Part shown: one piece after another, positions 1 through 40,430 of the stretch
Numbering within the stretch: the first letter of the stretch is position 1
Layout: the number at the start of each line of letters is the position of its first letter
Source of the DNA: Anthoceros angustus
Taxonomy: Eukaryota; Plantae; Anthocerotophyta
Length of the DNA: 64,000 nucleotides
Direction of reading: 5' to 3'
NCBI GenBank assembly: GCA_010909165.1
Contig: VJWM01000205.1
Location: 248,001 to 312,000 of the forward strand
Notes under the pieces: model-generated
What the model was told of the DNA's origin: nothing
Databases searched by the model: none
The model's input: the letters and a program-made list of their open reading frames with translations, nothing else
Made by a program: the position numbers and the translations under genes

Positions 1-771
1 CTCTGAAGCATTCCAATGCCCACATTGCGCATTTGCAAAGTAAAGGCTGGTGACTAACCCAATCCTTACTGTCAAGAACACTCCAAAGCGGAGAACATGA
101 TGGGCAAGCTATGACACCCTGCTTCTGTTCTCACCATGTACGGGCCTGGTGGGCTCAACTATCAGGCAAGAAAAACCCATCGGGCGGATTTGATGCAGCC
201 TCGTCGTACTTCGCACATGCCGTGGATGGCACGGGTCCCTCCGAAGAACCTGCCCGCCTGACTTTTAAGCGCGGCCGTGTGCCCCACCATGCTTGTCATG
301 AGTTTAACTCCTGCTCTTCGACAACCGAGTGAACGGGCAGCTGGCAGACAGTTGCTACCATTCCTTTCCTTTCCTTCGCGCTTCGCTTCGCTTCCCTTGC
401 CTTCCCATTGTCTAGAGGAAGCCTGTGCTCTGTGACGAAGGTTAAAATGCAGCTCGTAGACTGTGACGAACGAAAACATTGTGAAGAAAAGGAAAAAGAC
501 GAAACGGTGAGTGTCTGTGAAACTTCCATTGGAGTCCTCGACGTCATGGACAGTGAAATGACAGATGACAGCGCCTTCCTGGCGAGGTAGTCTAGAAAGC
601 TATTGGAAGCAATAGGATGCTTTCCCCGAGACGCAACTGTAGAGCTCCAGCGGCATCCTGAGCTGCAGAATCCATTACCTTACGAGTGTGCAGGGCAGCT
701 GTGTGGCAGTGTGGCGATATGAGCTGTTGATGGAGTTGTGTGATCCTGACGGAGAGCCCGATGCTTGGCGG

Positions 772-1309
772 ATTGCAGATGTTTTGAACTCGTAGATGTG
801 ACTGTCGAGCTTACTAGAATGTGTATCATTCAATAAAGGTATTGCCCTTCATGCCAAACATCGTTTTCGCGTGCTTTCTGTTCGAAAGCGGATCACTATC
901 AGCCTCTTGCGCGCCCACCTCCTCGGTTGATGTGAATCCAGCTGTGCCAAGAAGGTTCAGTGCGCTCCAGAATTAGATCAAGTTTCTTTGCCTATGTTTG
1001 TCAGTTGTTGTGCTTGCGGGTGTAAAATCGGGCTGCAAAGGAGCCACCTCAAACGGTTACATTGCCAGTGGCGGCTAATTGGAACCCGTGGCCTGACCAG
1101 AGCATTTGATGGTTTCCGAGGTTTTTCAATCGAGTCCTCTCATCTTCCTTGCAGAGAAATCGTGAACTGTTTTAAGAAGTGTATCAACGGCCAAGAGCAA
1201 ACTTTCTTTGTCAGCAGATGCCATTGACATGAGGTGTGTAGCAAGCAGAAGTGGCTGTCATTTCCAAGCTGTTGCAATATGGTTGACCAAAGTTTGAGTT
1301 ATTGCAGAT
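772..1309 (+). repeat. Circularly permuted near-identical copy (order A-B) of segment 2856-3388 (order B-A), flanked by 9-bp direct repeats ATTGCAGAT at 772-780 and 1301-1309
   Basis: 781-831 matches 3337-3388 and 832-1309 matches 2856-3336. The four differences I found are 1-nt shorter homopolymer runs in this copy. Confidence 0.95.
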
Positions 1310-1455
1310 CTATCTTTCCATTTGGCGAAGGAAAACCCTGGACAGGCTGGATGATGAATTTGGTTGAGCACCAAGCGGGTGATGCTGTATCAGGCATGAT
1401 CTCGTCGTAGGATTCAGGTATCTCGGAATTCTTCACGGGTAGAGAAGGAACCGGA

Positions 1456-2005
1456 ATGACATGCCAGGGCGGCGTGGATTTGGTAATGTGGAAGAGGCCT
1501 TGGTTGGCAACAATTGTGCTGGCGTGCGGCACATTTGTGTACCACGAGTGTGTTCTGAGGGACCGGAGCTTGGTGTCTCTTCTCTCTGACGTCCTAATGG
1601 TGTTTTTCATTACAATAGGAACACTCGGGTTCTACTTTCGCAGTCGGAATGAGCCGATTCTGGATTTCCGGCAGTTCGAGGTGTCCGCGGATGCTGCCAA
1701 CAGTGGCTGCCTTCGCCAACACAGTCGGAGCTGCCGAAAGCGTTTTGCGCGTTGCTGCCTGCGGATCTGACATCAAGCTGTTCATCAAGGTGATTTTCGT
1801 ACTTTTTCTGACAGCTGCGATGGGAAGGGCGGCGTCTGGCGGCACTGTCGCTTACGTTGCGTTATGGATCATCTTCATTATACCAATTGGCCTCGCGAAG
1901 CTAGCACCAGCTGCCGCTCAAAGCAAGTTTCTCAATCGGCAGGCGTCGGCTGTGGGAAACCCTGGCAAGGCTGGCCCTCGGAATCGGTACGTGCCGTCAT
2001 CGTAG
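1456..2005 (+). CDS. Reticulon-like protein (RTNLB22/23-like), intronless, with a frameshift near 1700 (sequencing error or pseudogene)
   Basis: ORF 1456 (DLVMWKRPWLATIVLACGTFVYHECVLRDRSLVSLLSDVLMV) joins ORF 1649 (ANTVGAAESVLRVAACGSDIKLFIKV...GRAASGGTVAY). The ANTVGAAESVLRVAA motif is typical of plant RTNLB22/23. Confidence 0.75.
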
Positions 2006-2677
2006 GCTTGGCGAAGTTATGAAATCAGTGGGGAGATTCAGTCATTCTTCCTTTGCAAATCAGTCTCAGGATGTGTGGAGATGCTCGAAGACAACATTTC
2101 GTTATGCTGGTGTTGGATGGGATTGTTGGTTGGGCAATTCATTACCTAGACTACTTTAACCCGCGCCGGTCACCCGGGTGGTACAACTGCGATGGCAACT
2201 GCGGAGACTTCCTGTTTGTGGCTCTCTTATGGTCGTTGGTCAGTTGACGCCATCGCTGTGGTGTTGAGCGAATGTGAAACGAGAGAAGTTACTGGTGTTA
2301 CTGGTGAGGGAATGCTCGCGTGACTCGAGACAAACTGAACTGTGCTTTTAACCGGGACAGGAGGACTTTGCGACTTTGCCAACGCCAAGCTCGGCTCTTG
2401 GGCTTCATTTTGAACAGCAGCAAGTGGCAACATTCCGTCTTGGTGGTTCTTCTCCATTCTGAATGTTGCGTGCCTGTCTGATTTCCGTTTCATCTATCGC
2501 GGTCGTCTGTGGTTGTGTGGTGTGCCGTGTACAATTGACGGAATGTTGAGAGGAAGTTGTGTATGACAAGGAGGCACAGCGACATCTTGGAGGATCTCGA
2601 GTTGCTGCAGGAAAGGCGGAAGCAAGGTGGGAAAGCTTGATGGACGGCCACAGGAAAGACCGGGTTCTATTGCGCAG

Positions 2678-2723
2678 CACTATTTTAGGCTTCTACCCAG
2701 CACTATTTTAGGCTTCCACCCAG
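2678..2723 (+). repeat. 23-bp tandem duplication (CACTATTTTAGGCTT(C/T)...CCCAG x2) upstream of the CCDC57-like gene
   Basis: 2678-2700 vs 2701-2723, one mismatch. Confidence 0.9.
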
Positions 2724-2843
2724 ATCCTGTGTGTCTGTCTACGGGCATCTGCAAGCTGTCAGGCTATCCGAGTGCAGAGAACCAATCCGCATAGTGGCAG
2801 AAGGTTCCGTTGCGGCTTTGTCGTGGACTCTTTTAGGCTTTAG

Positions 2844-3388
2844 TGTGTGTCATTCAATAAAGGTATTGCCCTTCATGCCAAACATCGTTTTCGCGTGCTT
2901 TCTGTTCGAAAGCGGATCACTATCAGCCTCTTGCGCGCCCACCTCCTCGGTTGATGTGAATCCAGCTGTGCCAAGAAGGGTTCAGTGCGCTCCAGAATTA
3001 GATCAAGTTTCTTTGCCTATGTTTGTCAGTTGTTGTGCTTGCGGGGTGTAAAATCGGGCTGCAAAAGGAGCCACCTCAAACGGTTACATTGCCAGTGGCG
3101 GCTAATTGGAACCCGTGGCCTGACCAGAGCATTTGATGGTTTCCGAGGTTTTTCAATCGAGTCCTCTCATCTTCCTTGCAGAGAAATCGTGAACTGTTTT
3201 AAGAAGTGTATCAACGGCCAAGAGCAAACTTTCTTTGTCAGCAGATGCCATTGACATGAGGTGTGTAGCAAGCAGAAGTGGCTGTCATTTCCAAGCTGTT
3301 GCAATATGGTTGACCAAAGTTTGAGTTATTGCAGATGTTTTTGAACTCGTAGATGTGACTGTCGAGCTTACTAGAATGTGTATCATTC
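2844..3388 (+). repeat. Donor segment of the permuted duplication, bounded by imperfect 12-bp direct repeats TGTGT(G/A)TCATTC. Contains the putative start-codon exon (3182-3260) of the CCDC57-like gene.
   Basis: TGTGTGTCATTC at 2844-2855 and TGTGTATCATTC at 3377-3388. Confidence 0.9.
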
Positions 3389-6300
3389 TTATTAAACCAA
3401 GGTATTTTTCTGCAGGTCACAGGGGATGGAATTACGGGTCCGCCACTTGTCTGAGCAGCTCCGGACAAGAGATGCGGAAGTGTCAGCCTTGAGGTCTCAG
3501 ATCGGTTTGCTGACGAGTGACTTCAAGTATAATCTCAAACTTCTGAAAGAACGGGATTGGGAGCTGGACCAAAATGAACATCAAATGGTAAGATTCTCAT
3601 AAGCTGTATGAGGAGTACTTGTGCCCAAGTCCTCTAGTAGATCCTGAAAGAAGCTTACCATCTTGGCAGAAGGAGATGCTCAGAAAAATTGCAGAACAAG
3701 AGAAAGAGCACAAAATTTCTGTTGCTGAGTTGACAAGGTGCAAGGAAGCATCAGATCGAGACCGTGCTTGCATTCTGGAACTAAAGGAGACCCTAGCGCA
3801 GTATCAGGACGCTGTGAGTGGATGTTGCACTGATGCACCCAGATGCTAAGAGTTGTAGCGATATAAATTGAACTGCCTGTGAAGTGCAGGTGCATACAGT
3901 AAGACAGAGGCTTGAAGAAGCTAGGCAGATGAGAGACCAGGAGCTCTCCCATCATCACTCTGAGCGTGAGCTCCTGCAAGGCAGTAGGTCACATACTCTA
4001 ACTTGCAACAGATTCCCTGCTCACTCACTCTCTCTTGTCTGCCATTGTCAACTAAGAAACTGAACGGGCTGGTCAGAACTGCAGAAGCAAGCTGAGGAGC
4101 TTAGAGCAGAAATAGAGGTTGCACGCAAGGAGGCGGCTGCAGCTTGTGAGCGCAAGTGGTCTAAGCTTCTCCATGAGTGCAACCAGTCAGTGGCCTCACT
4201 TGTATCGGAGAAGGGTACACTTTTATTGCAGAAGAGGCAACTGGTAATTTTAAAGTAGCCAAACTGCATACAAGTTTGTCGCTAAGGAAAAAAACTGCAT
4301 GCAAGTGATTTCTACAGAGTGACGCAGTGCATATACCTTTCATCACAAGTCTCGGTCGTGGTTCTTTCTTTCAGGAGAAGGAGATGGAGGGTATGCGGGA
4401 GCAAGTAAGGCAGCTTCAGCAAACTGTTGCCGACCTCTCTTCAGTTGCTGGTGAAAGCAGAAAGGAGTGTGTTGTGTTGAGGGATCAACTCGAAACCCTG
4501 AAGGTAATTTTTTTTTTGTTCTCTGTCCTTTCAGAAAACATACGATCATATCTTCAATTGCCATCAACATTGCCGTAAAGGCGATGCCATATTTCTGGAC
4601 TGATTACGGAATCTTCCTTCCCCACTATTCGCATTGCAGAGTGTTAGGGTGTTAGGTTGTATTCAATATCCATTTCCATCAACCACCTCATGCCGTTTAC
4701 AGACAATTCTGATGAAATGAGGTGTGGAAACACAGGTGGAGATACATCGTAAAGTCGAAGAACTGGAACATGAAAGGCATCGAGCAGTAGAGTTGGAGCT
4801 CGAAAGGCAGTGCAGCAGCAAACGAATTGCAGCACTTGAGCATGAAAGGGGGTGCATCGAGGAATCTGTTAGCCAGAGGCTCGCTGCAGAACATGAAAGT
4901 GCTGTGCAAGATCTCTATTCTCAGCTACAGTACGCTGAACATACTCTTGCTGTGGTGCGCAATGAAGCAGAGTCTAGGTGATAATCCTTCACATTCCCAT
5001 GTACAACCGTATTGCTGGCAATTCATGGTCTGTCAGATCCTGAAAAAAACAGCTTCTCCTGGACTGAAGGGCCATGGAGCAGAATGCCAACCATGTGAGG
5101 GAGTTGGAGAAGCTGCACCAGGATGCCGAAAAGGAAGCTATTCATAACGCAAATGAAGTGCAGAGGTTGCATGAAGACGCCCAGAATCATGCCACTAACT
5201 ATGCCAAAGAGCTTGAGAAGTTGAAGCAGGATGCCCAGAACCAAGCAACAATGTACGTAGCAGCTCTTTCCTCATGGAGAGTTTTCTTTGTGTTTCAAGT
5301 CTATCTTTTTCTACCTCAGCTGACGGTGATAAGGTTGCGAGCACTTGAACGGTTTTTCCATGTTATGTACAGGTTTGCAAGAGAAATTGCTGTTCTGAAA
5401 GAGAGGTCGAACTCAGCGGTGTGTGCATGCCAGTCCCGTCCTCAGAGCCACAAAGGAGAGCAGGTATTTTGATTGTACTCATATTCTATATCGGAAGGTG
5501 TTCAAAATGTAACGGTTTCTATGTTTCTACTATCCACGCAGGCAGTCAATGCCACAAGCTAACTGAGAACGTGCCACAACATGTTATATTGCTGGCAGGG
5601 TCCACAAGGTCCAGCAGTCAATAAAGGTAGTTTGGTAGAAACTGGACACGGATCAAGCAAAAATGTACTGAGACATCACATGCAACATCCACAGACAGGT
5701 AGAACTGGTGAGATTGTGCACGGTGCGGGCATTTATGACCTTAGCAAGGCAGGTAGTGGCAGTGATGAGCTATCAGGGCCGGAAGACGACGAAGCTTATG
5801 GGCAACATGAGATCGGCGACCTTGACATATCACCTGCAGAAGCGAGTGAACGATTCGCACATGACACCAACCATTACAGAGTGCGGATGGTTTTGGAAGC
5901 TGAGAACCGATTCCTGAGGGAGAAGCTGAAAGAGCTTCAACATCAAAATGAAACCGTGGGGAAGATCATCTTTGATCTGAGGCATGAACTAGAAGCTGCA
6001 GGGCTTCTTAAACCTACGCAGAATGTAGACCCCAACTACGTGGGAAAAGGTGGTCAACCAGTGAGTCCTCCAGCACCAGCAGCGACACCAAGCAACCTCT
6101 CTCCCAGGAAGCCCAGTTCTGGTGCTACATTATCAAGGTGGCCGTCAGTCGTCTTCTCATATCTGAATTAATCACCAGGTCGGACATGGTTAACAATCCT
6201 ATTCTCTTGCACCTGAATGTACTTTGCAGGCCCTTCTTGAATCAAGCTTCAGGGTCTGTGAGTCCAGCTACATCACCCAGGAAGGAGTCTTTCAAAGATG

Positions 6301-7043
6301 AGCCACCGTTGTCACTAGCAGATAGACAAGAGCTCCAACTTCTTCGATCTTACTATGCCGAGCTGAGTGCCGAAAGCGATCAGGTGCATGCTTTGCTCGA
6401 CTCACATAACCACTTGCCTCGTCTAGGAGAAAGGGAAAATTCTTGTTGCACATCCCTTTCCACGTAATGTTGACTTTCTGACAAAGAAATTTACGGTACA
6501 CAGCTTGAGTATGTGCATGGGAAACCTCCCGCATCTGCTGCCAGTTCAATAGCTTCTAAGACGAAACGGACGAGTTTTACCCCGGAAAGCTTTAGGCTGA
6601 ACCGGATTTCTCCTCTTGCTGACCATCAATCATTTGCCAAGTCAAGGGAGCTCTCAGAGCTCACAAGCCGGCAGCACCACAGGCAAGGTTTCTCTCCTGG
6701 AGCTGGGCACCAGCGGCACAGCACGTCAAGGGATAGTCTGCAGGAGAGAAGCAGGCTGATTGAAAGGAGGTTCCAGGATACGAGGAAGAAGGCTGAGAAG
6801 AACCTAAACGACCGTGCTGGGAGAACAAGCACACCCCTTGTACGTCATAACGCATTGAAGATAATGAATGCTGGATCCTTCCGTAGGCCATCCAGTTCTT
6901 CAGAGAGCGAAGGTGATAGCTGCTGTGGGAACCTTGAGGACGACAGTGACTCTAGTGCAGATGATGCAGCTTTGAGTCCACCCAAAGCCTTTCGAAGGAC
7001 ACCCGTCACAGACGCTGATGGGAGGGGTCACATGAAGAGTTAA
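3256..7043 (+). CDS. Multi-exon coiled-coil protein, CCDC57-like (centriole/basal-body family). A further 3' exon near 7150-7260 is possible.
   Basis: ATG AG|GT at 3256-3260 splices to 3416 giving MRSQGMELRVRHLSEQLRTRDAEVSALRSQIGLLTSDFKYNLKLLKERDWELDQNE, resembling the CCDC57 N-terminal motif DFVYNLQVLEERDLELERY. Later exons (ELELERQC; LKELQHQNETVGKIIFDLRHELE) also resemble CCDC57 segments. Canonical GT-AG introns. Confidence 0.65.
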
Positions 7044-8016
7044 GGTGTGAGTCAGTCCTGCCTTTTTCCTGTACATTCCCAGTTTTCCACCTGTATAAGA
7101 ACCGGAATATTGTCAGAATACTGTACTGACGGTTGCTGAGCTTGACAGGTTCTTAAAGGAAGGGCAACAAAGGTAGTTGATGATCGACTGGGTTCCATGG
7201 TTCCTACTCCGCCTGTGACAAGGCTGAAGAGTATATTGAGGCCTGGTACTAGAAGCTCAGGTTACTTTGAAGGTTGTACTGCACAGACATTTTGCAGTGG
7301 CTTCCTTCATTCGCAAACAGGCAAACAGAGCGTTTTGATGTTTACAGACAGGGTACTTGGTTGATTCAGACTGCAGTATGTGACAGGTAACTCTCAGACC
7401 TGCTAAGGCTTACTCTTGGAAGCTCCCTGATCCTATCCTATTCTACACTCTGGCAGAGATGTTGGTGACTGTTGTCAGACCTAGGTAATTTACCGCGTCG
7501 GGCAACACTGATGACGCAACTATGTTAGTAACTTGGGTCCACCATGGCTCATAATTTACATCCCGCATCTAGCAAGGCTGATGACGCAAAAATGCTATCT
7601 TGATCCTACACGATGATGTGAGAAACGAATATCCTACACCCCCTATAAGTACACCAATGCTCAACTAAGCCGATACAAGCCTTCCTCTTCCTTGAGCTGC
7701 CGCACCTTGAAAAACAGACAAGAAGAGATCCAATATTGTGCACTGCGGAAGTGCAGGAGGCCATCAGAACCATGGTCTCCTGCCATGGGAAAGACGAAAG
7801 TGCAACGACAGATCCCAACATACCTGTACAAGCAGGGCACGTATGACAATCAATATTCCTGGACGACTCGATCAGTGGCATTCGTATTTCCCTCAAAAGT
7901 TATAGCTCCTGGGCTTGTCGACAGTGCCCTACAACACACAGGCAGACGAGAGGAATTATTAGCTTGAAGTTCAGAGTTATAAGTATTCATGAATGGCAAG
8001 CTTTGCCATGGAAAGC

Positions 8017-11000: not shown

Positions 11001-14000
11001 ACATTCAACACCTTAGTGATGCAGAAAATATTGATACAACCATCTTCATTCACAATGCACTAGCAAAACACGATTACTTGTTCTTAAATTCCATCCCTAC
11101 AAAGAGACGAAACACAATTACTTGTTCTTGCGCAGCCTTTTCCCTAGACAGCTTTGTTTCCAACTCTCGTTGTAGGGCTTCTTTTTGTTTTTGGAATGCA
11201 AGTTGCTCTTCTCTCGCGGATGCATCCTATGTGATGTTCAAGAGCGTTGAATCAAGCATACCAGCCCGTCAAGAATTTCAGGTGTCTAAAAGCAAATGGG
11301 ACCGACGGAACAATTCAAGGTCTATCTATGCACCATTTGCAGACAATTTTTTGAACCACATAACACTGCTGTCCCGTGATAGCAGTACAAACATAAGAGT
11401 ATACATTCTTAGTTTTTCATACTGCTCTCAAACCTTCAATCTAAACAGTACCTAAAATATCTGCATAGCATGTGTGCGATCAGTCTACAGGTGATAAGGA
11501 ATACCAAGCGCTGCCGCTTTTTCTGTGCTTCTCTTTCTTTCCTATCACGATCATACTCACGCTTCCTTTCCTTCCTTCTTTCAACAATCTGCAAGAAACT
11601 TGTTCGCATGTCAGAGCCTTATACCTACGAAGTAGGTGTTTAACAACGAGCAGAAATGGAAAAATCAGAAGGTGACCTCGTGGGGGATGGAGGCATCCCA
11701 TTCCTGCTCTGGTTCTTCATGCCTCCGATATTTCGGATCCGGGTGATAGTCACAGTACCTATCCGAAAGACCCACACCACCCAAGGTCCATTACATTTCA
11801 TTGCGAGAATCAAACTTGAAACTCCTGACAGTTCACAGAACATGAGATCCGACTATCCTAGCTCACCAGATGTCTGGCAACGAGGTAGGATCCGAGCAAT
11901 TGGGTAGGACACGCCACTTGAGACAGGTGGGGTTATCGCACTGGACCTGGCAGAAGCATTTCATTTGGGTAAACTCCAAGCACACTTTACCTCCAACAGA
12001 CAGACTGCTAACAGCTGTCCACGTACCCACACGACATCAGGGACATCCTCCGAAGAAGGGCCCTGACCAGGACGCTTTGGTCGTGGCTCAGATTGCACCA
12101 CTGCTGTAGTATTGCGCTCCTTTTTCTCCCACCTACAAAGACGATTGTGTAAACACATATGAAAATGCCTTCAAATGTGCAGCCGCTCAAGAACCGCACC
12201 TACCAGTACTCAGCCAACACATCCGAAAGTTTCTTCAAGAGTCGCCGATAAGCTATTGTATCATCAAAATCCTGCGAAGTGCGCAGATATATCAAACCAA
12301 AGCACCTTAGAAACTACAGACAGGAACAAGAGTATCAATAAGACGTACCTGCTTGTTATGAGTCGGTTGAAGAAAATCTGCCTCAACGATTCCAATGACC
12401 CCCATGCCCCTCTCGTTCTCCTCCAATTGAATGCCCACCTGAACCGCAGACATGTAAGGGAGTTAAGCATGAGAGCTATACAGCTCGACATAGCCAACAT
12501 TAACCAAAAATCCTGAGTATAGCAAATACCCTCATATAGGCCTTGATTAGTCGGTTCCGATGGTAAAGCATCATACCGTAAAGATTCTTGTTCTCTGTAT
12601 TGAACCTACATTACAAGAACCATATCAGACCAAACCCCCTGCCAACGACATATAGAGCGTAATTCAAGATTGTGATCTGCAGTGCAGTTCAAAGAACATA
12701 AACTTAAAAACAGAAAGCAATCTGTCCCACCCTAGTTCAATCTTCAGAGTCTCCGACACTCCAACCGGCTTGTAGGTCTCCGTCTCTTTCATACTGAGCA
12801 AACCAGATATCCTCTTTGTCTTCACTTTTTTGTCACTACACAAATAACCCGCCTTAGTTGGAGGATGGCTCTTCTCTGAGAATGAACAAGATTGCATTCC
12901 ACCAGAAGCATTTGAGGGCCTGTACCGTATGAAGATCTGCATTCGTGGGACTTTGTACAGTATAGCGACATATGCACGCAACGAGTAATCCGTTGTGACG
13001 TCTACAGAGTTGGGCTGCAGAGCAATCACATGATCAGTACAGGGTTCTACCGGATCCACGACAGGTGATGAAGCTTTCCATCAACTAGAACAGGGCAGAA
13101 AAGTGCCAGATTTTCCCCGGGGCCGGTCGCTGAACCTGCCAGGCATATTTTTGCCTCCGATATCAAAGCCATATTGCCTTCGAAGCCTTAGCTGTTGCAA
13201 ACCCAACAGCTAAGACTTCATAATGTAATTGGTACCTGATTTGGGCGCAGCTGCTGAAAGTGCGATGAGCTGATTTCAGACGTTATACGGATGTCATGTG
13301 GGTCACTCTTAAAATCCAGTTCAAGATGACCTTCATGTCGGCGCAAGTGCGATATAATCAGGATCTGCGACAATCAGTGGGTAGACATGGATGAACAGCT
13401 GGACCGCATAGTTCTGTTTTGGAAATCGAAATTAAACATCCCTCTCCAAAAGCTTCTCAGGACACAAGGCATTCCAAGGCTCCCAATACATCTGACAAAA
13501 AGTACTGGTGAGAGTGGACTGACCCCCCTCACAAACAGTGTTCTACTTTGTGTACACTTACAGCTCCAGTCTGAGGAATGGCTTCTAGCTGAGCGAGAAG
13601 ACTTTCTTCATCAGGAAATATGGAGTATTCACAGATAGCCGCCAAGCTTTCTTCAGCATCAAGGTCCATTTCAGATAGTCTGTCTGTCTTGTGGTTAAGG
13701 ATTCTAGTTGAACATCACATCACAACAAGGGGGTCGAGGTGGGGAACGTTAACAAGTATCAGCTATCCAGAAGCAGTTATCGGGAAAAGACATCTCCTGG
13801 AGGATACTTCCATTCAAGTCCCAGGAGACCTGTGGTATAAGAATATCCTCTGCTCCAGTTGAAAGCTGCACCAAGATAGACGTTCAACGTACATTTGTCA
13901 AGAAGCTCAAGAAATCTCATGAGAGGAGGTATCTTCTGAAGGACTTAACGACAAACTCACCAGAAATGTCTGTGAAAGGAAGCCGGCTGTCATACTTGTT

Positions 14001-14746
14001 GCACATTTGGTCAGGACCAGAACATCCTGCCCCAACCGCATCGTTCCGGACTGCCATTGAGCAGTTGAGAACAAAGGAGACCAAGTAGTTAGAGCATAAT
14101 GAAGAGCTAGCATGCGCACAGTCGTCATGACCAAATCAGCTAAACATAACGAGCAAAAACAATGTTACCTCCATGAAAGCAGCAAAATCAGCTATAGTGA
14201 AGAGGATGCTAACCTTGAACCCATTCCCATGCTTGCCGATGGACCTGTCTCCAGCAGTCATTTGCTGCAACATTGAAGAGTCAATCCATGAGCCATGCAA
14301 CTTCGGTACTTAACGTTCAAAGATGCTGCTACGCACAAGCTGCAATACGAACACACCCGTGTCGAAAACAAAGTAGGAAGCTGAGAGCAGCCTCACCTTC
14401 TTGGAGTGTCCAAAACTGAGCATCTTGTGGAGGCGTTCAGGAGTCAAGCCACAGCCATTGTCCATGAACACCAAACAGGGCTCACCGTTGAACTCCTTCA
14501 TATCAATGCAAAATTGAGATGCACTGACATCCGGGTCGATGGCATTGTCGATCAGCCTGCGTTGGACAGCGTACCGTACACGCGATCAAACCAAGACCCT
14601 ACCACGCACCTTTCAACCAGGCAGGAAGCATTATCCGAGTCTTACTCTGCAATAGCTCCAAAAACCCAACGATGACTGGTACTGTTGCTGTGCAGGAATT
14701 TGGGATGAGTGGTGCAGTGCTTGACATGGATAAAGGGCTCTGCCAT
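8017..14746 (-). CDS. MORC: MORC (microrchidia) GHKL ATPase, CW zinc-finger type, with long repetitive coiled-coil C-terminus; multi-exon
   Basis: Spliced exons give [34 protein letters not shown]|[10 protein letters not shown]..., [27 protein letters not shown]|[37 protein letters not shown] and CW domain W|[15 protein letters not shown]...W|YC. Last exon reads [23 protein letters not shown]...GCPL*. Confidence 0.93.
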
Positions 14747-16869
14747 TTGATTCCGTCTCTGTCGGAGAAAGTGGTACCCACGACCAACCGTTCAGCCAAG
14801 CTCTTCACATCAATTTGACCGCGCCATCCTGCGTCTATCCCTCCTCAAAGCGGCAACAATTGCCTGAAAACATAGCCGACCGAGACAGACTCGACACACG
14901 ACCTAAGGCCACGAAGGACCGTTCTTGCTCCTCCCCATTCCAGATTTCCACTGCCCATCAGGCGTCCCTATCCAAACAATTCCATTGCCGCTTCCCAACG
15001 CTGTCCAATTTATCAATGGCTGTGATAGCACCTCGACTGCGAGCTGGAGGACCGTACATTCACCACCACGGCAACAACACCCCCCCTCCGTTCACCTGCC
15101 CATAACGCTGATCCTCCCAAATGCGCAAGTCCTGACTCAACGTGATTAACCAGCGCCCAATGTACGCCCCCGGGGCCACGACACAGCGCAGTCACAGGGA
15201 AGCAGCAGCAGCAGCAGGCATTCGCAGGCAATAGGTGGGGCGGCACAAAATTCGATCCTGCCCACATTCCAAGCCCGATTGTGCGCAAATTGCGATTCCA
15301 GCTCACATGAGGAATGCACCTGGCACCCAATCACAAGCGTTCAAATTCCCATGTCCCCACAGGAGTATCCGACAGCAGGTAGGACAAAAAGCAGATGCCG
15401 TCCGGCTCCGGAACCCGAGGAGGCGGCGTGCGCAGCGCAGGCGAAGGAGAGGGGGAGGGAATGCGAGAAGCGAGGGCAAGCAAGGCGAAGGAGGAGGAGG
15501 TGGGCGAGGCAGCGCAGCACTCAGAAGCGCATTCCGTGCAGGAGGTGGAGGAAGAGGGGGGCCGGGGCCGGAGTCGGAGTCGGGCGAGGGCAGGAGCCTG
15601 ATGAGGGGTCGCGGGCAGAGCGGCTGGGGGGCGGGCCGGCTGTGGGCAGCGTGTCATTATTGGGTGCCATGCGTGGGGTGGTACAGCGTCAGCGGGTGGT
15701 ACATGCGGGCGTAGGCGGGAAAGGAACCCGGGGGCAGGGCCGGAGCTTGGCGCCAAGCAAAGTTCCCAGGAGACAGGGCAGCAGCTGGCCCGGCCTGGCC
15801 GAGTGGGAGTGGGAGAAGAAGCGGAGCGTGAAGGACTTGCTCATTCATGCTGGCCTGCCACGGGGAGGGGTCGCCGTCGCGGTCAGTGCCAGTTCAGCAG
15901 TACATCACCATATGCAGCTGGTGCTTGTGCGGTAAACGGAAGTCGGGAGCAGGGAGCAGAGACCCGGACCCCGCTACAAGCCTGCGCTCGGCCTGGTCGT
16001 GAAAACGTCAGACTACACGCAATGCTTCTCCCAGTCTCCGGCACGGCGGCCGGGGCCTGGGCCGGATTTTGGTGCCTTCCTATTGGCTGAAGTCTCTTTT
16101 CAAATGCCCCGGATTCCTGGCCTCTCTCCACAGCGGTAACGCGCACCAGCCAGGCTTTCCGACATGTACAGATTAGTAGGAACTTCTGCACTTTCCCTCC
16201 GGACAGCAGTCGTGACTCGTCCAGTCCCAAATTGCCCACCACCAGTGACCACCACCCAGCATCCCGCACAACAGCACAACACGCAGAACGCAGAACGCAG
16301 ACCGCACACCGCACACCGAACTCCGACTCATTCCCTCCTAATAAGCAGGATTCAATTTTCATTTGCAGTGCTCAAGGCTTAATTGGACTCGGTAAGCATT
16401 GTTGAACTTTTCAAATGAGTTTTGAAAGCATAAGTCTTAATTTTTTCTCTTCTTATATTTATCTTTTTTATCCTATATATCAAAATTTGTATAGGTATAT
16501 ACTTCCTTCTTCCATCTAAAACTAAAACTATTCTTAGTTAAGCTATCTATTATATCTTTATATAAAAAAATAAGTATGATAGAGTTTATACATCATCTTA
16601 GATAAAATATGAAATCTTCTCAATAAAGACCTAATCTACTTTATCTTTGTCGCCATGTGTATTGGGTCTTGATAAGAGGATATGTATGTACATGTGAAGT
16701 CACAGTCTATACGTTTTGAAAAATCTCATGTATAGTACAATGATGTTTTTTTGTGGCACAAGGTTACACGTACTTCCTCTTGGGAAAGTGTTTTTGGCAA
16801 AGTGACTTTGTGCTTCATGACACTTTGGAAACCACATAACCCAATGAATCTTTTGTGCTCAAAGCTATA

Positions 16870-17460
16870 AGTATGTATGTACTTCGTGGATTGTTGGAAA
16901 AGCAAAAATTGCGAAATGAAAATGTTCCGAGTAAGACGACAAGTATGTACTTCTACCAAGATTGGAAAAGCAAGCAGAGATCGTGCGATGAATATTTTTT
17001 GTGTGAGGTTGCATGTTAGTACTGTACTTGGTCGGCGCTAGGAAAAGCAGACACAGATCGTGCATGAATATTTTGGGTGCGAGTCTATATGTACATGAAT
17101 ATTTTGGGTGCGAGTCTATGTGTACTTCGTTGACGCTTAAAAAAGCAAGCACTGATCGTGCAATGAATATTTTCTGCTCCAAGCTACATGTACTTTGTCC
17201 GATGCTTGGAAAAACGATGGATATTGCTTTTATGTATGTACTTGGTGGAGGCTTTATGGATGTACCTTGTTGACGCTTGGGAAAAAGTAGATCATGCCTG
17301 TATGTATGTACTTTGTTGATACTTGGGAAAGCGCACATCGTGCATTGAATATTTTGTGTGCGTGACTACATGTACTTCTTAGAAGCTTGCAAAAATACAC
17401 ATGGTGCAATGAATATGAACATTGTTTTGGCAGAGCATGTACTTTATCTTCTCAAAACAC
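16870..17460. repeat. Degenerate tandem minisatellite (unit about 65-70 bp, roughly 9-10 copies) in an AT-rich, probably transposon-derived segment
   Basis: Recurring ATGTACTT...GCTTGGAAAAGCA...GATCGTGCA(A)TGAATATTTT(G)...GAGTCT blocks. Confidence 0.75.
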
Positions 17461-18599
17461 CCCATGCACGCAACGTATGTATGCACCTTATCTCGGCAAA
17501 ACACGGACTGTTCCATGAAGGCAATATGTACTTCAATGATGAAAATGTATGTATGTACACACTACACACATTGTATGTATGTACCACCCAATGAAGAGCA
17601 AAATTTAATGAAGAGCAACCTCAGTGTACCTTATGCTATCGAGAATTAGACAGCATAATAAAAAGCAAAATGATACAAGATTGCTCGGAGCACATGAGCC
17701 ACTACTAGCTTTAGAGAGTCATAACAAGTGGCATAGACCTTTTTAGAGTATGTAAACTTAGTAGGAACAATGAGAAATATGCACTATTCACCCACATCCA
17801 TCATAATATCAAGTTGAAGAACTCGAATACCTTCTGTTAAATGTAGGATAAAACCAAAATTTTTAGCATATATTTTATTGATAACGTAATACTTTTGTAT
17901 TTCTAAATATTGATTTCACCCTTATCAAGCAAAGCTGCCTTCATAACATGGGGTCCAAATAGCAAAGTGATGGTAGATGTGTTTTATGATCATAATTTGC
18001 AAAAGAAGACTTCGTAAGGGGCATATGGGTAACCAAAAGTTAAGTTTCGAGGTAGAGAAAGCTCCAACATGAGGAGGAGATTTTTTTTAGCGCTCACATG
18101 AGCGAGGAGATTTGCTTGCTTAGGTCTTGTAGGTAGGTCTGCGTTCTCACTCTGAAATGCGGCCTCGTCAAATTCATGGAGATGAAATTGTTGAGACATA
18201 TATTTCTAACAGATTAGATTATTGTAATGTACAGTAAAGATAAAGATTTCAGCGTGTGCATCTCAGACCTCAGGAGTCAAGAAATGTATCCGCCCCAGAT
18301 GCTGACGGAGGGATGGCCTGCGATACGATCGGGATTCCAGGCGAATTGAGCAAGATATGGCACCCATTACATACACCAAGCCCACATCGAAATGCTATGG
18401 AGAAGCCATGGACATAACATGCCACTCAGGATTTGGCATACGCAAAGCATTTCTCGCTTGAAAGATTGAGACGTAGGTATGTAGTAGCATCATGAGGGTG
18501 TGGTCCAGGAGCAAGGAAAGGAGGTGGGCAGCACTTGCATCTCCCAATCAGCAACAGGCTGAGGGGGGGATGAAAGTGCTGGCCGCCCGAGGCCAGCGC

Positions 18600-20875
18600 C
18601 TAAGCATAGAGGGCTTTCAATTCGGACGCGAAAGTCTTCTTCAGGGCCTCGCGCTTCAGCTTGAGAGCTGCGGTCACAAGGCCAGACTCGGGAGTCCAGG
18701 GCTCCGGAAGCAGCTTGATCTTGGTGGGAATCTCGAAGCGCTCCAGCTTGGACTGCTTGCCCACCTGCGCTAGCGAGCGCAACACCTCCTGCACCGCCTC
18801 CTTCTTGGAGCAAAGGTCCTGGATCCTCTCGAACTCCACCCCGGCCTTCCTGGCCCAGTCCTCCAGCGCGCCCTCCGCCGCCACCACCAGCGCCACCACG
18901 AAGCTGTGGAAGGGGTCGGCGTGCACCATGATGTTGTCCACGAACTTGCTCCCGGCCAGACCCGCCTCCACCTTGCCCAGCGACACGTACTCCCCGTGCT
19001 GCAGCTTCACGATGTCCTTCTTCCTGTCCACGATCTCCAGGCATCCGTCGGGGTGGAACTGGCCGATGTCCCCGGTGTAGAACCAGCGCAGCCCCCGCGC
19101 GTCCGTCTTATAGACCTCCTCCGTCTTGGCTTCGTTCTTGAAGTAGCCGAGGGTGACGCTGGGTCCCCCGATCACAACCTCCCCCCGCGGCATGGGCTCG
19201 TCCGTCACCCGGTACCCGCCCTCCTCCCAGCTCACCAGCTTCACGTAGCAGTGCGGCACGGGCGGGCCAACCCGCCCCACCGAAGAGTCATCCCACTCGC
19301 TGAAGGTGGCGCCCGCGCAGGTCTCAGTGAGCCCATACCCCTGCCCGATGGGCGTCCCGAGGCAGACGTTGATGAACCTCTGCGTGTCCCCAGCCAGTGG
19401 CGCTCCACCCGACAGCAGCCCCCGGAGCTGGCCTCCCAGCACAGCCCTCACCTTCCGGAACACAAGCGCGTCCCAGAGCGCCTTCTCGAGCCCCCACGCC
19501 CCCCACCACTTCCCCTCCACAGCCGCCAGCCGCCTCCGGTACGCCAGATCGAAGAGCGCCTTCACCAGTCCCCCCTTGGCTTCCAGCTGCCGCCGCACGC
19601 CATCCCGCACCCGGTCCAGGATGGCCGGCACGGCCGTCATCAGCGTGGGACGGAGCTCGGACGCGTCCCCCTTGCTCCCCTTCTGGATCTTGTTGCTGGT
19701 GTCAGTGAGCGTGAGCGGAGACCCGTACCCGATCCCCGCCCCGCTCCCCACCATCACCACCTCCGCGGCCAGCTCCAGGACGTGCGCCAGCGGGAGATAG
19801 GCGACGTAGGTGTCCTCCGGCCCCAGCCCCGGCACCAGCTGCGTCATCCCGCCCACAGTGGCCGCCAGGTTGCGGTGCGACATCACCACGCCCTTGGGCA
19901 TCCCGGTGCTCCCGCTGGTGTACATGATCACGGCCGTATCCGAGTGCGATGGCAGGTCGGCCGGGACCGGGCTCTGCTGCCCCCGGGCCTCCACCTGGGA
20001 GAATGCCAGCACCGTCCACCCAGTCCCCCGAGCCGACTCTACCACCTCCTTCAGCTCCGCCTCCTCCCGTCCTCCATGTACACCACCCGGCGCACCGCCC
20101 CGAGCCGCTCCCGCAGCCCCGCCAGCTTCCGCAGCTGCTTCACGTCGCACACCACCGTCGTCACCTCCGTCTCCGTGAGCGAGAAGGCCAGCGCCTCCTC
20201 CCCCAGCGAGGCGTAGATGGTCACCGCGGGCGCATTCCTCCTGAAGCAGGCCTGCGCCGCGATGAGCCACTCCGCGCGCGTCTCTGCGAAAATGGCCACC
20301 CGCTCGCCCTTGCCATGGCCCAAGCTCGCCAGCCCCGACGAGAAATCGCACACCCGCTGAAACGTCTGCGCGTACGTGAGCCACACGTACCCTCCCAGCA
20401 CCAGCTTCTCAAAGGATTTCCCGTCCGCGCTCTTCTGCACCTCGCGCTTCACCAGGGTTCTGGTCCCCAGGAGCCGGTTGTGCGGGAATTTCTCCTTGCA
20501 AGCTTGCTCGAAGAGCGCGGCCAAGGTGGCCGACCCGTCTAGATCCTCCACCAGGCTCAGGAACCTGTGGTTGCGGTACACCACGCCCTCCTCCGCCGGC
20601 TCCGTCTCGGAGGCAGGGGCCAGCTCCACCCTAACCCCACGCTGCTTCGGCTTCTTGCCCCGCGCCGTGATCGCCATCACGGCCGCCACGGCCGCAATTC
20701 CCACCCAAACCCCCGGCATCTTCACTCCCCCAAGAAGAGCAGAACCAAGATCCCTGCCTTCCTTGCCGCGCACGCTGCCCACGCCCTGAGCTTCTGCAAC
20801 TGCGGCCAGGGCCTTTGTAGCTGTCAGGACCAGAGCCAGGGCGGAGATGGCCACGAGGCCCAACAGGGAAGCCAT
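18600..20875 (-). CDS. LACS: Long-chain acyl-CoA synthetase, LACS8/LACS9-like; intronless, with an apparent 1-nt frameshift at about 20066-20068
   Basis: AMP-binding motif [14 protein letters not shown], plus GYGLTET, FYTGDIG and [21 protein letters not shown]. Adding one G to the GGG run (GAC GGG [G]AG GAG GCG) joins ORF 20051-20875 to ORF 18600-20384. Confidence 0.95.
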
Positions 20876-21385
20876 CGCAAAGGGAAGGTGGAGAGCAAAC
20901 AGGAAGGTATCGGTGAGCCCTCAGAACGGCAACTTCAATGACGGGAGGAACAGCAACATCAGCTGCACAAAATGGATATATGTACTTTCCCGCCGGGCTG
21001 AGCTGGGACTCGCTGGAAGCTACACTTGGAAAGCGCAAATCGGCCTGCTGATTCATCGGCACCAAAGCCTCAAGACGCTTCCGCCAATCCGGTGGCGCGG
21101 CCTGGCACAGCGAGCGCGTGTCCTCCCGACTCTTCCTGCATCCACGTTCGCCACCTCGACGGATGCTAATCGTTGCTTATTTGGATGAGCCTCCGGTCGT
21201 TTAGGGCACCAGGCTTGTTTTCTCGAGACAGATGCATGCATCGATGTATATAGGTCTGCGGAAGGCATCGATTCCCGGCCATGGCTCTTAGGGTTCATCC
21301 AGCGGACCGGCATTTTGCTGCACGATGGTGAAGGCATCGTCCTCACAGGCAGCGAGCTGACCGCCATTTGTAGCTGGTGGGAATC
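20876..21385. promoter_or_regulatory. Short divergent (head-to-head) intergenic region, putative bidirectional promoter
   Basis: LACS start at 20875 (-) and MMTAG2-like start at 21386 (+) are about 510 bp apart. Confidence 0.5.
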
Positions 21386-22640
21386 ATGTATCACCCATCT
21401 CGCGGTGGCGTGAGAGGCGGACGGGATCGTAAGGATCTCTTGCTTTATTCAGAATGCGCAGAAATGTGGTGTGCGTGGTTCTTGGGCTCTGCTTGACCGT
21501 GTGGGTGTTCGTGATGCTGACTTGATGATGCTGGGTTCGCAGAATTTAATTGGGACGACGTGAAAAATGACAAGCACCGGGAGAATTATCTTGGCCACAG
21601 TATCAAGGCTCCGGTTGGCAGATGGCAGAAAGGTGTGTGAATGTGTGTGTGCTAAGGTTTGCGCCATGATTCTGTCAGTGTTTGATGCCGAATGCAGAGG
21701 ATAGTGACGGTTGGAGCTGTGATTTGCAGGAAAGGATTTGCATTGGTATGCCAAGGGCGGTTCGCAGAAGGAGGCGGATGCTGCGAGGGCGGAGATTGCA
21801 AGGGTGAAGGAGGAGGAGGAACAGTTGATGCGAGAAGCTTTAGGTCTGGCTCCCAAGCGGGATACTAAGCCACGTGGCAGCAATATTGACAAGCATGAGG
21901 CTGCAGAGCTTTTTAAAAGGGGAGTGAAAGACGATTCGGCTCCTGATTATTCGCCTGGACAGCGTGTGGAAGGCCTTGGATTCGCGCCGTAAGTCACCTT
22001 AGGCCCATCTCTTGTCATGTCAGGTTTCGATCTCAACATCTTAAGGTATGGTTTGTTATGCAGGGCGCCGAAGCCTACTGTTGTTCAACAGGATGCAGGT
22101 GAAGGTTCTGCCCGGAGGAGGAATAATGACAGAGTAAAATCTGAGGCGGCCAGACAGCCTCAAGGACGAGGTAGGGAGGTTTCTGCACCAAGCCGAGTTG
22201 AAACTGTTGGGAGGGAGGAGGAGGAGGCTGGCCCTAGTCAGGTGCAGGCCTCAAGAAGTGAAGCGGATGACTCCAGGAAGAGTAGAGCTGTCAGTAATGG
22301 GAGGGATGAACATGGTATTCGCTCAACGTCCTCCAATGCTGACACAGAGCGGGACGCAGATGTCCTGCCTATCAGAAAGCACGGGAAGGCTGGAACTTGT
22401 GAAAGAGATCGCAAGAACGGAACCGATTCAGAGCCAAGGAAAAGAAGTGAGCATAGAGGGTTGAAGAGGTCACACAGAAGAACATCTGATTCTGACTTTG
22501 AAACCGATCAGAGTGGGGGGAGGGTGACGAGTAGGCACAGAAAGGAGTCTCAAGAGACGGACAGAAGGAGACATGGCGACAAAAGGGTTGCAAAGGAGGG
22601 GCACAGGAGAACTGGTGGAAGGGCATCAGATTCTGAGTAA
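21386..22640 (+). CDS. MMTAG2-like (multiple myeloma tumor-associated protein 2 family) small nuclear protein; 4 exons
   Basis: [14 protein letters not shown]|[30 protein letters not shown]|GKDLHWYAK...[15 protein letters not shown], followed by an R/D/S-rich tail. Confidence 0.88.
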
Positions 22641-23474
22641 TGTGTGGGTGGTTGTGCAGAAGGTAGAGGCAGAAAGAACACTGTCATGATATGATTTTAC
22701 CAGGGTATTGGAAAAGGTTGGAGTGGTTCATAATTGGATAAGAGTACACCTCCTGGGGTGAAGGAATAGCACAGAACTCGTACAATGGGAAAAGTCAATT
22801 CCAAGCCTAACCTTGAGTGGCTAAATGCATGTAGGATGCTGAAGCTGAACTTCGTCTACTTTCCTTAGTAAAAGCGCACACCACAAGTGCAGATTTCTTG
22901 TGCACTTCAAGGTGTCTAAGCAACTATATGTTAGACATCTATTGTGGGCAATATTCAGCAGCTTTGTGGGGCAGTGGTCTCTACTAGACCTGTTGCTTGA
23001 CAGTTGACGTGCAGGTCGTAGTAGACTGCCTAACAGATTCTGTGGGGTTGTTCTTCAATCTGCAATTCTGTATAATCTAGTCTGTGACACCATCTGCACG
23101 CAGTTGCTCGTGGACTTGCATTGTGAGGAAGACACCCTCTACCAGATGGTACAGTTGTTCTCTGTTAGGTTATCTGTGTTTGAATTGAATAGATACTGTT
23201 TGTTTCTGAGAAAGGAGTCATTGAGAGCCTACGCACTCAGCTCTGTTCTTCATGTCGTGCCTTAGTCAATCGGCTCGTATAGTCGGTCCAGCTAGTTGAG
23301 AGTGACAAATATGGCAGCCGTAGATGACTTCAGTCAGACGTTCATCCCCCTCAGTCTGTGGTACAGGCACCTCAAGTAGCTGTAAAAGCGATGCCAAATT
23401 TGTGGATTGAACTTGGAATCTCATCTTTCTCCTATTCGCATTACGAAGTGTTAGTTCTGTACGATCTCCTTTCT

Positions 23475-24610
23475 CATCAACCACCTTACGCCCCTTTCAG
23501 ACTATTCTGACAAAGTGAGGTGTGGAAACACAGGTGGAAATACGTAGTAAATTTGAAGAACTGGAGACTGAAGCATCGAGCATCAGAGTTGAAGCTTGAA
23601 AGGCAATGCAGCGGCAGAGTTGCAAAAAATGGGCATGAAACGGGCTGCATCGAGGAGTCTGTAAGCCAGAGTCTTGCTGCAGAACATGAAAGGGCTGTGC
23701 AAGATGTCTACTTTCAGCTACGGTCTGCAGAACATATTTTTGCTGCTTTGCGCAATGAAACACAGTCTGTGTGATAATCTCTCACATTCCCATGTACAAC
23801 CGTGTTACTGGCAATACATAGTCCGTGAGATCCTGAAAGAGCCAGTTACTCCTAGACTGGAGGACCATGAGCAAAATGCCAACCATGCGTGGGAGTTGGT
23901 GGAGAATCTGCAACAGGATGCTGAAAAGGAAGAAAGTCACTACGCAAATGAAGTGGAGAGGTTGCATGAGGATGCAAAGAATCTTGCCTCTAACTATCCC
24001 AACGAGCTTGGGAAGTTGAAGCAAGATGCTCATAATCTAGCAACAATGTACTACCATCACCTCTCTCATGGAGGGTTTTTTTAATCTTTGTTGCAACAAT
24101 GTCTTGTTCTATCTCAGTTCATGGTGATCGGGGTTGCAAGTGGAAGTTGAACATTTTCTATGTGCTCTGCACAGGGTTGCACGAGAAATGGGGACCTCAA
24201 TTAAGTGGGGAAAAGGTGGTCAAGCAACAAAACAGTGGTTCCCCAAACAAGAGCTGTGACACCAAGCAACCTCTCCCAGAGAGAAGCAGGTCTGTTGCTA
24301 CAAGATCTATGTCACTGGCCATCGTTCATCTTTGCACCTGTAAGGCTCACCAGCTAGGACAGGGTTGTCGACAGTATTTTCTTGGAGTTGAATTTTCTTT
24401 GCAGGCCCTTTATGGATCAAGCTTCAAGGTTTGAGAGTCCAACTACGTCAGCCATGAAGGAGCCTTTCAAAGATGAGCTGCCTTTGTCGCTAGCTGATAG
24501 AGAAGAGCTGCAACATTGTCAAGCTTACTATGCCGAGCTAAGTACCGAAAGGTCTTAGTACTGAAAGCGATTTGGTTTATGCTTTGCTTTACTTCCATTA
24601 CCACTTCCAT
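23475..24610 (+). pseudogene. Decayed partial duplicate of the CCDC57-like gene, middle part (parent about 4677-6418, parent about 5395-6030 deleted)
   Basis: Exon and intron similarity, e.g. GAGGTGTGGAAACACAGGTGGA at both 4720 and 23514. In-frame stops are present. Confidence 0.9.
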
Positions 24611-25249
24611 AGCTAGTGTAGGTATTCTTTTACAATATGGGAAAGTCAACCAACCTTGTGAGCGATGTGAATTTCGGACAGCATTTTTGGTCTCCCAACT
24701 CATACTTATAACTTTAACAAGACCTACACAAAATATGTACCTACCTAGTTATATTATAATTTAATTTATCTTACATAATAATAGATGATCATGTCACTAG
24801 AGTTTTAAAAGTACTTGACGCAGGGAGTCACTCAGAATGCACAGTCAAGTAGTGTAGTATGTTCAAATGTGATATGCTTTCATGTTATATTCACTGGGAT
24901 ATTATATATATATAATATTATATCAAACACAATATAAATATGTAGGTAAAAATATGTTATAGGTATATATAAATAATATATTATTAAAAATAATGTACGT
25001 TTTATGTATGGAACATGGAGACTTTATAAAAAAAGTAGAAATGGTAAGTCTTATACCATCGAGATTTTATAAAGAAAGGAAAGATAGAAAGTTCTATCTA
25101 CACCGATGCGGTGGAGAACAAGTTATCTACCCTGAGCTACCTATCACCGAGGCGCTGGAGAACAAGGTATCTACCCTGAGCTACCTATCACCCCCAAGAT
25201 GTCGTAATGCCTACTAGGATAGGGAAGGCCCTACTTACCACCGGAGTTG

Positions 25250-26600: not shown

Positions 26601-28962
26601 CAGAAGTAAAGGTTATTGCATTTGCCTATATTGTTGCTCTTGGAGAGAGGCTTGAAGCTCTCGTTGATCATCCATGAGGAATTACGAGGAAAAACGAGGC
26701 ATGACTTTCCTGGCCTAAGAGGATAAGAGGCCCCTAGCCGACCTTAAGGACACCTCGAGGGGGAAGGTCTCATCCTCAATACCTAAGACGAAGCTCTTCA
26801 AGATACATGAATCCTGATTAATCCTCTTTATACTATATTTTAGAATATCAAAGACTTGAGATATATGTTGGTCTATGTTGATTTATGTTAATGATGCCAA
26901 GTCTTTTTACAGCAACAACACAAAGAATGTGGTGTCATGATATCTAGCATGCAGTCACGGGGGATTGGTCCACGAGGGTTGCAAGCACTTTGATCCGTTC
27001 ATTATTTAGCTTTAGCTTTCAAATAGACATTAAATATAAAATCACAAAAAAACCCAATACGTCAAATCCCAACTGTCATGGGGCACGACACGTTCCCTTT
27101 GTGCCAATGGCCATAACATGTAAATAATGAAGTATAGTAGATATGGTTATCATATATACATCCTATTTAAAGTTATCTACTTTTAGACTTTTTTTTTTTT
27201 CATTCTATGAATATGCTCCTTGTAAGATTTTTCGTTTTCCACCTTTCATTATCTCTATTATTCATTATATATCTTTAGCTTTTAAATACAAATAAAATAT
27301 ATAATCACTAAAAATGCACAATGAGTCGGATTCCGCCGTCACGGCATGTTAGGTTCGTTTTGCGCAAATTGCTATGGCATATAAATAATAAATCAAGGTA
27401 AAGATGGTTACCATATATACATTATATTCAAAGCTCTCTACTTGTCAAAATATTTGTTTTCATTTTATGAATATGCTCTATTAAGACTTTTGGTTTGTCA
27501 TAACATGAATCTTTCATTATCATAAAAATTTAATATGTTATAAATTAAATTATTTTGATCCTGAAAGAATATTATTGGATTATGATTCATGGATTGTGTG
27601 ATACAACATTTCGGATTGACTCCCTTGGCGAGACTTGACCCTGAATAGAAATTGCATGCCTTACGTAATTCCTGAATAGAAATTGCATGCCTTACGTAAT
27701 TAGGCTGATGATGTTGAGTAATTATGCAATGGAAGTATGAAAGAATTCCATTGTTAAATATATGAACACCATACCCCTGATAGGACCTGAACCCAAACCC
27801 GCAATTCTTTAATTCCAAGTCAAATGTCTTATCCAATAACAAACAAACAAACAAATTTATTGTAAGTCCACCAAGGACGGACATACCGCCATGGGGCTTG
27901 GTTTTCTGAGCAACCTGCTCCATGGAGTAAACTAGGCTACAAGCACTAGAGGCATTCCTCTCTAGGTACCCCATTCGGATCCCCCTTGCGGTGCAGAGTT
28001 CTAAACTACGACGTTTTTAAGGTATGTGTGTGTATTTGGCCTAAACCATTTAAACTTTATTTATGTCCACTAAGCGCGGAATGACCACCATGGGATAGAA
28101 ATGGTACAACGTAAAAGCGGTGGAAGAAAGTGTACACATACATATGTCTTAAAAAAACATACATGTTATATTGAGGGAAAAAACGATGGGGAAAACCCAT
28201 GCAGCACGAGACAATGAAGGGGGACCTCGGGAGTCAAGGCGAAAAAGAGCGACTAAGCCCTTACCTAAAGTTACCTACTGCTCCTAGAACATCATATATG
28301 TCTTAAATAGAGCAATGACTAACAACGTATAGCAAAACAATCAATTAATTGTATCTATAAAATCATAAGGAAAAAATATAGCAAATTAATCAATTAACCG
28401 TATTTATAAAATTGTAAGGATGAAGATTAAAAACAACCAACTCATCTCCACGAAAAAGGCAACTTGAACTGAAGCATCCTCAAAAGTAAGTATCTTAGAT
28501 TGCCATTGCTAGGGTGTAAGATCCAATTAGGCCACAGGAGCTTGATAATGTTGAGAAATTATGCAATGAAAAATATTTAATATGATACAATATCTCGGAC
28601 TGACTCTCCTAGCGGGACTTGTCTACTAAGGGTACAAGCACCACCATGGGACAGAAAAAGTACAGTTGAAAAGTGGTAAGAAAAGGCATACACATATGTA
28701 CATCTGAACTAGAGAGAAAGAAATAGTGAAAAAGAATTAATGCAAACACATGCATGTCAGAAAAAGTTCAGGGACGAGGATTAAAATAACCAAATGATCA
28801 CCATGGAAAAAAGGGCACGGAAAAAAGGCCACTTGAGCCATAGCACGAGCAGCCTTAAAAGCGGTAATTAAGCTTAATAATGTTGAGCAATTATGCAATA
28901 AAAATATTTAAGAAATACATTTAATCCAATTACATAATTCAAAATCCTAAATTTTCAATCTT

Positions 28963-33417: not shown

Positions 33418-33489
33418 GTAGGTGACTGGCACTGGACTGGGCATTCAGACCAACCTCAGAAACCCCCCCCGAGTCAACGGATCAACCAT

Positions 33490-40166: not shown

Positions 40167-40430
40167 CGGAGGCTGCAAGCTGCAATCCAAGCTGCAACTC
40201 TGTGGCGGGAGCCTGTACACTGCTATCAAGTCTCAAGTGGGACATTGAAGTGCTCTGACGCTTCTGTGGCCACGCATAACATCCTACATCCTACATCCTG
40301 CCCAGATCGATATCTGGCTGCCTGAGGGAGTCGCAAGAATCCATTCACTGCCGGGCACACGGCTGCTGTGCACCATCAGCTCCGGATCCCAACTGCAACA
40401 TGAGCTCAAAAGGATCATACTTGAAGCCAA

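Follow-up and report, generated by a model that had tools for sequence, protein, structure and literature searches.

A circularly permuted 533-bp duplication joined at short common words in an Anthoceros angustus contig

Results

Genes and other features of the locus

Near the start of the window (the whole 64-kb stretch of Anthoceros angustus DNA that was analysed) a short unit is present in two copies, with a reticulon gene between them and a coiled-coil gene downstream of the second copy. The reticulon gene (RTNLB22-like, 1456–2005, + strand) was recognised by Pfam domain PF02453 and by its homologues. Its domain is split over two reading frames near position 1700, with no gap between the two parts (PF02453 positions 2–77 and 80–141); the split reflects either an assembly indel or a pseudogene. 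The distance from the end of the upstream copy of the unit to the reticulon ATG (1456) is 146 nt, in agreement with an initial annotation of this DNA, which had placed the landing point about 150 bp before the reticulon ORF.

Exons of the coiled-coil gene were read individually by reference. The first clearly coding one (3416–3596, + strand) contains an ATG at 3426 and lies outside the duplicated unit. Starting from this ATG, about 30 residues precede the conserved-looking FKYNLKLLKERDWELD stretch. The annotation had assigned the start-codon exon of the gene, which it called CCDC57-like, to the unit itself, a claim that is unproven. An ATG at 3256, followed by a GT at 3261, is indeed present in the unit and is in frame with the exon at 3416. 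However, an overlapping four-codon upstream ORF at 3245 precedes this ATG, and the ATG at 3426, outside the unit, suffices as a start. Judged from its sequence, the unit may carry an untranslated 5′ exon or a promoter only, or nothing functional. Its ORFs gave no Pfam match, and a search of positions 1–4500 for Rfam families, tRNAs and SINEs found none.

An older partial paralogue of the coiled-coil gene, comprising its middle and 3′ exons at 75–85% identity, is found 18–27 kb downstream. The matching blocks have different offsets (4570–7490 versus 23380–24550 and 33500–34470). This paralogue was considered as an outgroup for the duplicated region and rejected, since the similarity starts only at about 4570 and does not include the 5′ region.

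Elsewhere in the window, a LACS9-like long-chain acyl-CoA synthetase gene (18603–20875, − strand) is intronless and situated in a 60% G+C island. A single frameshift, marked by the meeting of two tblastn segments in different frames, interrupts it at about 20069. Its best database identity is 73–75%, and it may represent a pseudogene, a retrocopy or a paralogue that evolves fast. The G+C content, in 2-kb bins, swings from 39% to 64% (gene islands versus AT-rich stretches, 14000–22000 and 32000–44000). Short tandem duplications that are exact or almost exact (31, 31, 44 and 56 nt) are located at 17063–17124, 27640–27701, 25101–25188 and 40431–40542, respectively. They were tried as further cases of 9-nt joins and rejected, their joins being of 0–4 nt with mismatches present.

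Anatomy of the permuted pair

The upstream copy (781–1309, 529 nt) corresponds to the downstream copy (2856–3388, 533 nt) on the same strand, in circularly permuted order. In the description that follows, X designates positions 1–771, Y positions 1310–2843, P the end of Y before 2844, and Q the sequence from 3389 onward. All features of the pair are on the + strand; the words at the joins were placed by word search and alignment, and the segments between them by alignment.

At the downstream site, the order is P, the 12-mer TGTGTGTCATTC, segment B, the 9-mer ATTGCAGAT, segment A, the 12-mer TGTGTATCATTC, and Q. The left 12-mer (G variant, 2844–2855) forms the edge of the unit. It is followed by segment B (2856–3327), by the internal 9-mer (3328–3336), which is the permutation point, by segment A (3337–3376), and by the right 12-mer (A variant, 3377–3388). 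At the upstream site, the order is X, the 9-mer, A, the A variant of the 12-mer, B, the 9-mer again, and Y. The left 9-mer (772–780) makes the join of X to A, hereafter J1. Next come A′ (781–819), a copy of 3337–3376 that is one T shorter at 781, and the closing join J2 (820–831), in which the two ends of the downstream unit are fused on the 12-mer. B′ (832–1300), a copy of 2856–3327 that is three homopolymer bases shorter, and the right 9-mer (1301–1309), which makes the join of B to Y (J3), complete the copy.

A global alignment of A (3337–3388) plus B (2856–3336) against 781–1309 contained no substitution and four single-base gaps. Each of the four gaps falls in a homopolymer, and each time the upstream copy is the shorter one: T5 to T4 at 781, G3 to G2 near 953, G4 to G3 near 1017, and A4 to A3 near 1036. 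The exact blocks common to both copies measure 50, 130, 67, 22 and 273 nt. Chance is ruled out for them; the expected number of exact 16-mer pairs in 64 kb is about 0.5. The alignment thus bears out, to the base, the permuted 533-bp duplication (529 nt upstream) described in the annotation. Other elements of that description hold as well, namely imperfect 12-bp direct repeats bounding the downstream unit (11/12 match at 2844 and 3377), their fusion at the upstream internal junction, where the end of A meets the start of B on a common 12-mer (820–831), a 9-mer that both flanks the upstream copy and is found inside the downstream one (772, 1301 and 3328), and the loss of one homopolymer base as the sole type of difference (4/4 gaps).

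Short tandem repeats and the old paralogue aside, no long exact dispersed repeat other than the permuted pair occurs in the 64-kb window, which is otherwise clean and is no scrambled mosaic. A distance of 2 kb separates the two sites, which share a strand, have seamless joins and are away from the contig end.

Two observations were made on the sequences around the downstream unit. An exact 12-mer, TCAATAAAGGTA, occurs at 2854–2865, the very start of segment B, and at 5618–5629 in the coiled-coil gene. No longer word is common to the unit and its 3-kb downstream flank, and the match may be due to chance. A 23-nt tandem duplication with one mismatch, in 2675–2720, contains the 10-mer TTTTAGGCTT, which recurs directly before the left 12-mer of the downstream unit (2829–2843).

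Words at the joins

On the + strand of the 64 kb, the 9-mer is found at 772, 1301 and 3328 and nowhere else, and TGTGT[G/A]TCATTC at just three positions: 820 (A), 2844 (G) and 3377 (A). Because the upstream internal join has the A variant, the strict microhomology at the closing join (820–831) is TCATTC, six nt within an 11/12 match.

The 9-mer is the sole exact word of at least 9 nt common to the unit and the 780-nt upstream flank, where 1.6 are expected. About nine exact words of this length or longer are common to the unit and its flanks when 3 kb is considered on each side. In the 2.2-kb interval 2000–4200, three 11/12 pairs are spaced 200–1500 apart, and the pair used here is one of them. 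The words used at the joins are therefore among the longest available locally, while thousands of shorter ones were at hand, and this points to a choice of words driven by annealing.

The mismatch in the 12-mer is unlikely to be a consensus error, because no substitution is seen in 529 nt. If it is genuine, a rule requiring an exact 9-mer would not make the closing join, whereas a heteroduplex tolerates such a mismatch.

The joins were also compared with what different pathways are known to leave. Bounding repeats of 7–15 bp with mismatches allowed characterise direct-repeat eccDNAs of the rice type, and the 11/12 repeat at 2844 and 3377 has these properties. A same-strand circular permutation, with an internal join made of the fused donor ends, is what circle-mediated duplication leaves, and both features are present here. 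For MMBIR/FoSTeS, a nearby template and microhomology at each join are likewise found; the lengths of 9 nt and 11/12 nt, however, fall outside the 0–6 nt recorded in yeast. By this comparison, the join words fit annealing-dependent MMEJ (8–20 nt) better than MMBIR.

Possible routes to the permuted copy

Our preferred reading, held tentatively, is that of a real and very recent duplicative insertion by microhomology-primed copying. Consider a 3′ end that finishes in the 9-mer. It would leave its own template, anneal to the 9-mer on a copy of the unit, copy exactly one turn, and return to its own template via the newly copied 9-mer. Two templates can be envisaged: a 533-bp circle that the annealed 11/12 repeats had closed, as in direct-repeat eccDNAs, or the linear neighbour, which would ask for one extra switch at the 12-mer. 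The four homopolymer differences would be sequencing errors, in which case the copies are probably identical in DNA.

The insertion of a circle by one turn and a template excursion with three switches would account equally well for the structure, an equivalence that the annotation had already pointed out. Either copying route, circular or linear, would explain the presence of the 9-mer on both flanks, since each returns through the copied 9-mer. Two-ended end joining of a linearised circle is disfavoured, because it leaves the 9-mer on one flank only. A reciprocal single crossover at the 9-mer, the route favoured in the annotation, also yields the observed structure.

The assignment of 2856–3388 as the donor, on the other hand, is arbitrary. 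The structure being symmetric, the source site is not readable from the sequence. In the reverse direction, the 9-mers at 772 and 1301 could close a circle that then enters a lone 12-mer TGTGTGTCATTC at 2844. The product is the same, and an exchange within TCATTC also leaves the G variant on the left and the A variant on the right.

A broader proposal is that an active pathway in this plant copies small circles bounded by direct repeats back into chromosomes through the annealing of words of about 9 nt. We regard it as doubtful.

Real event or artefact

A serious competing possibility, which we take to be nearly as probable as a real event, is that one copy (the upstream one or, by symmetry, the downstream one) is absent from the chromosome of the plant. 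Polymerase template switching in an amplified library could then have created a chimeric molecule; alternatively, sequence could have been joined at short common words during correction, consensus or assembly.

The differences between the copies are suggestive in this respect. The copies are identical save for the loss of single homopolymer bases, all in one of them, as is expected of a sequence with little or no polishing support. The losses are distributed 4:0 towards the upstream copy, as if its read support were weaker, with a two-sided p of only 0.125. Among the upstream runs of at least three bases, 4 of 29 (~14%) are affected, versus ~0.8 indels per kb in two coding regions. The assembly itself is noisy, both genes that were checked having a frameshift (near 1700 in the reticulon gene, at ~20069 in the LACS9-like gene). 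Finally, zero substitutions mean zero age, and at steady state few real events would be so young.

Several properties of the upstream copy argue against an artefact. It has consensus quality (0.76% difference, no substitutions), unlike raw or single reads, and so probably has the support of at least two reads. Its closing join, an imperfect 11/12 match with six exact bases, is not one that an exact 9-nt k-mer seed would use. The lengths of its join words are in the range of direct-repeat circles in plants. No other event of this kind occurs in the 64-kb window. Amplification chimeras are mostly inverted, whereas this duplication is direct. Three seamless joins around a permuted 529-nt block placed 2 kb away match no assembler step that we know of.

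Searches for the same sequences elsewhere returned the following. Metagenome contigs were scanned for exact matches to two probes, a 26-mer of A and a 25-mer of B, and none contained either. Word-index protein searches found no protein of the same species or genus for the reticulon half-ORF (best matches 45–61%), nor for the 594-aa LACS9-like ORF (best 73–75%).

Other possible histories

The pair might also have arisen in several steps: a tandem duplication at the 12-mers by unequal exchange, an ectopic copy of A-B, and the collapse of the array. A tandem B-A-B-A intermediate would hold the A-12mer-B join, and short tandem duplications do exist in the window. However, at least three events would have to fit into a time too short for one substitution, neither site retains any trace of a tandem array, and the transfer of exactly one unit, bounded by the 9-mer, is left unexplained. 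We consider such a history improbable.

Even less probable is movement of the 533-nt unit as a small, non-autonomous mobile element with a circular intermediate, mobilised for instance by a tyrosine recombinase of the Crypton type. Elements of the tyrosine-recombinase class do insert by integration of a circle at a short common core. Against this, the unit has two copies only in 64 kb and gave no Rfam, tRNA or Pfam signal, and no Helitron-type ends were seen when ten possible insert registers were read by eye. Nor is there a fixed attachment site, because one site uses the 9-mer of the unit and the other the 12-mer. The 9-mer flanking the upstream copy is homology and not a target duplication, because the other copy contains it too. 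A transposable element would be expected to have definite termini, several copies and a target-site duplication that the element itself lacks, a combination not seen here.

A retrocopy that arose by reverse transcription and insertion of a circular RNA, here a back-spliced exon, was also considered, permuted order being a mark of circRNA-derived pseudogenes too, and an AG (2842–2843) and a GT (3378–3379) are suitably placed, before 2844 and at 3378. It is excluded by the join sequence: back-splicing at these sites predicts the G variant and an extra T, neither of which is observed, the permutation join falls on the direct repeat and away from splice sites, and there is no poly(A).

Discussion

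What the pair of copies would signify depends on which reading is correct. If the duplication is real, it would join the very few plant cases of duplication by a circle or by template switching in which all the joins are still legible and undecayed. It would imply that the word lengths that bound direct-repeat circles in plants (7–15 bp) also guide re-insertion, and would illustrate how a 5′ gene fragment can move in front of another gene. If, more specifically, a circle was re-inserted, the locus would be pristine, in that its source, the join that closed the circle and the two insertion joins are all intact, and a fragment of the promoter or 5′ exon of one gene would have been placed 146 nt before its neighbour. 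Were such re-insertion to occur genome-wide, it would constitute a measurable source of new sequence arrangements in a land plant. If the copy is an artefact, it would offer a concrete and easily tested marker of a systematic assembly fault.

Permuted duplications have been encountered in other organisms. Wine yeast provides further examples of the signature, and the Cs29/Cs6 alleles of cattle colour-sidedness (Durkin et al. 2012) are said to be the textbook instance of a duplicated segment permuted via a circular intermediate. The cattle rearrangements involve hundreds of kb, took place between chromosomes and are backed by population genetics and phenotype, whereas the present observation concerns one locus in one assembly. 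A summary of the Cs29/Cs6 translocation is given in PMC12235870.

For human segmental duplications, a circularised donor and its replicative interaction with the acceptor have been proposed (PMC7450558). The human duplications with a circular intermediate (Chicote et al. 2020, PMC7450558; PMC7188851) display the same swap from A-B to B-A order with the donor retained, and a closing join made of the fused donor ends, as here. Donor and recipient are hard to distinguish in the human cases (Takahashi and Innan 2020, PMC7188851). The human events are of 20–130 kb or larger and 95–97% identical, as compared with 0.53 kb and no substitutions here, and their junctions have 0–2 bp of microhomology or small indels, in contrast to words of 9 nt and 11/12 nt (PMC7450558, PMC7188851). 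Unlike them, the Anthoceros copy is 2 kb from its partner and on the same strand.

The closest parallel for the unit itself comes from rice, where direct-repeat eccDNAs are bounded by repeats of 7–15 bp in which mismatches are tolerated, and range from 100 to 4542 bp with a median of 767 bp (PMC10948907). The Anthoceros unit, 533 bp long and bounded by 11/12 repeats, falls within these limits. The rice study detected the actual circles and documented chromosomal deletion, not re-insertion, whereas what is seen here is the assembled sequence.

FoSTeS/MMBIR and plant filler DNA resemble the Anthoceros pair in that they too involve piecewise copying from nearby in cis, with microhomology at every join. 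Plant filler DNA is usually tens of bases long. In yeast, MMEJ uses 8–20 nt and MMBIR switches use 0–6 nt (PMC9657218); the latter differ from the present case, with its 529-nt insert and its words of 9–12 nt. The signature of a permuted duplication is thus already known, and what would be new, if the event is real, is its small size, its plant host, the length of the words at its joins, and the undecayed state of these joins.
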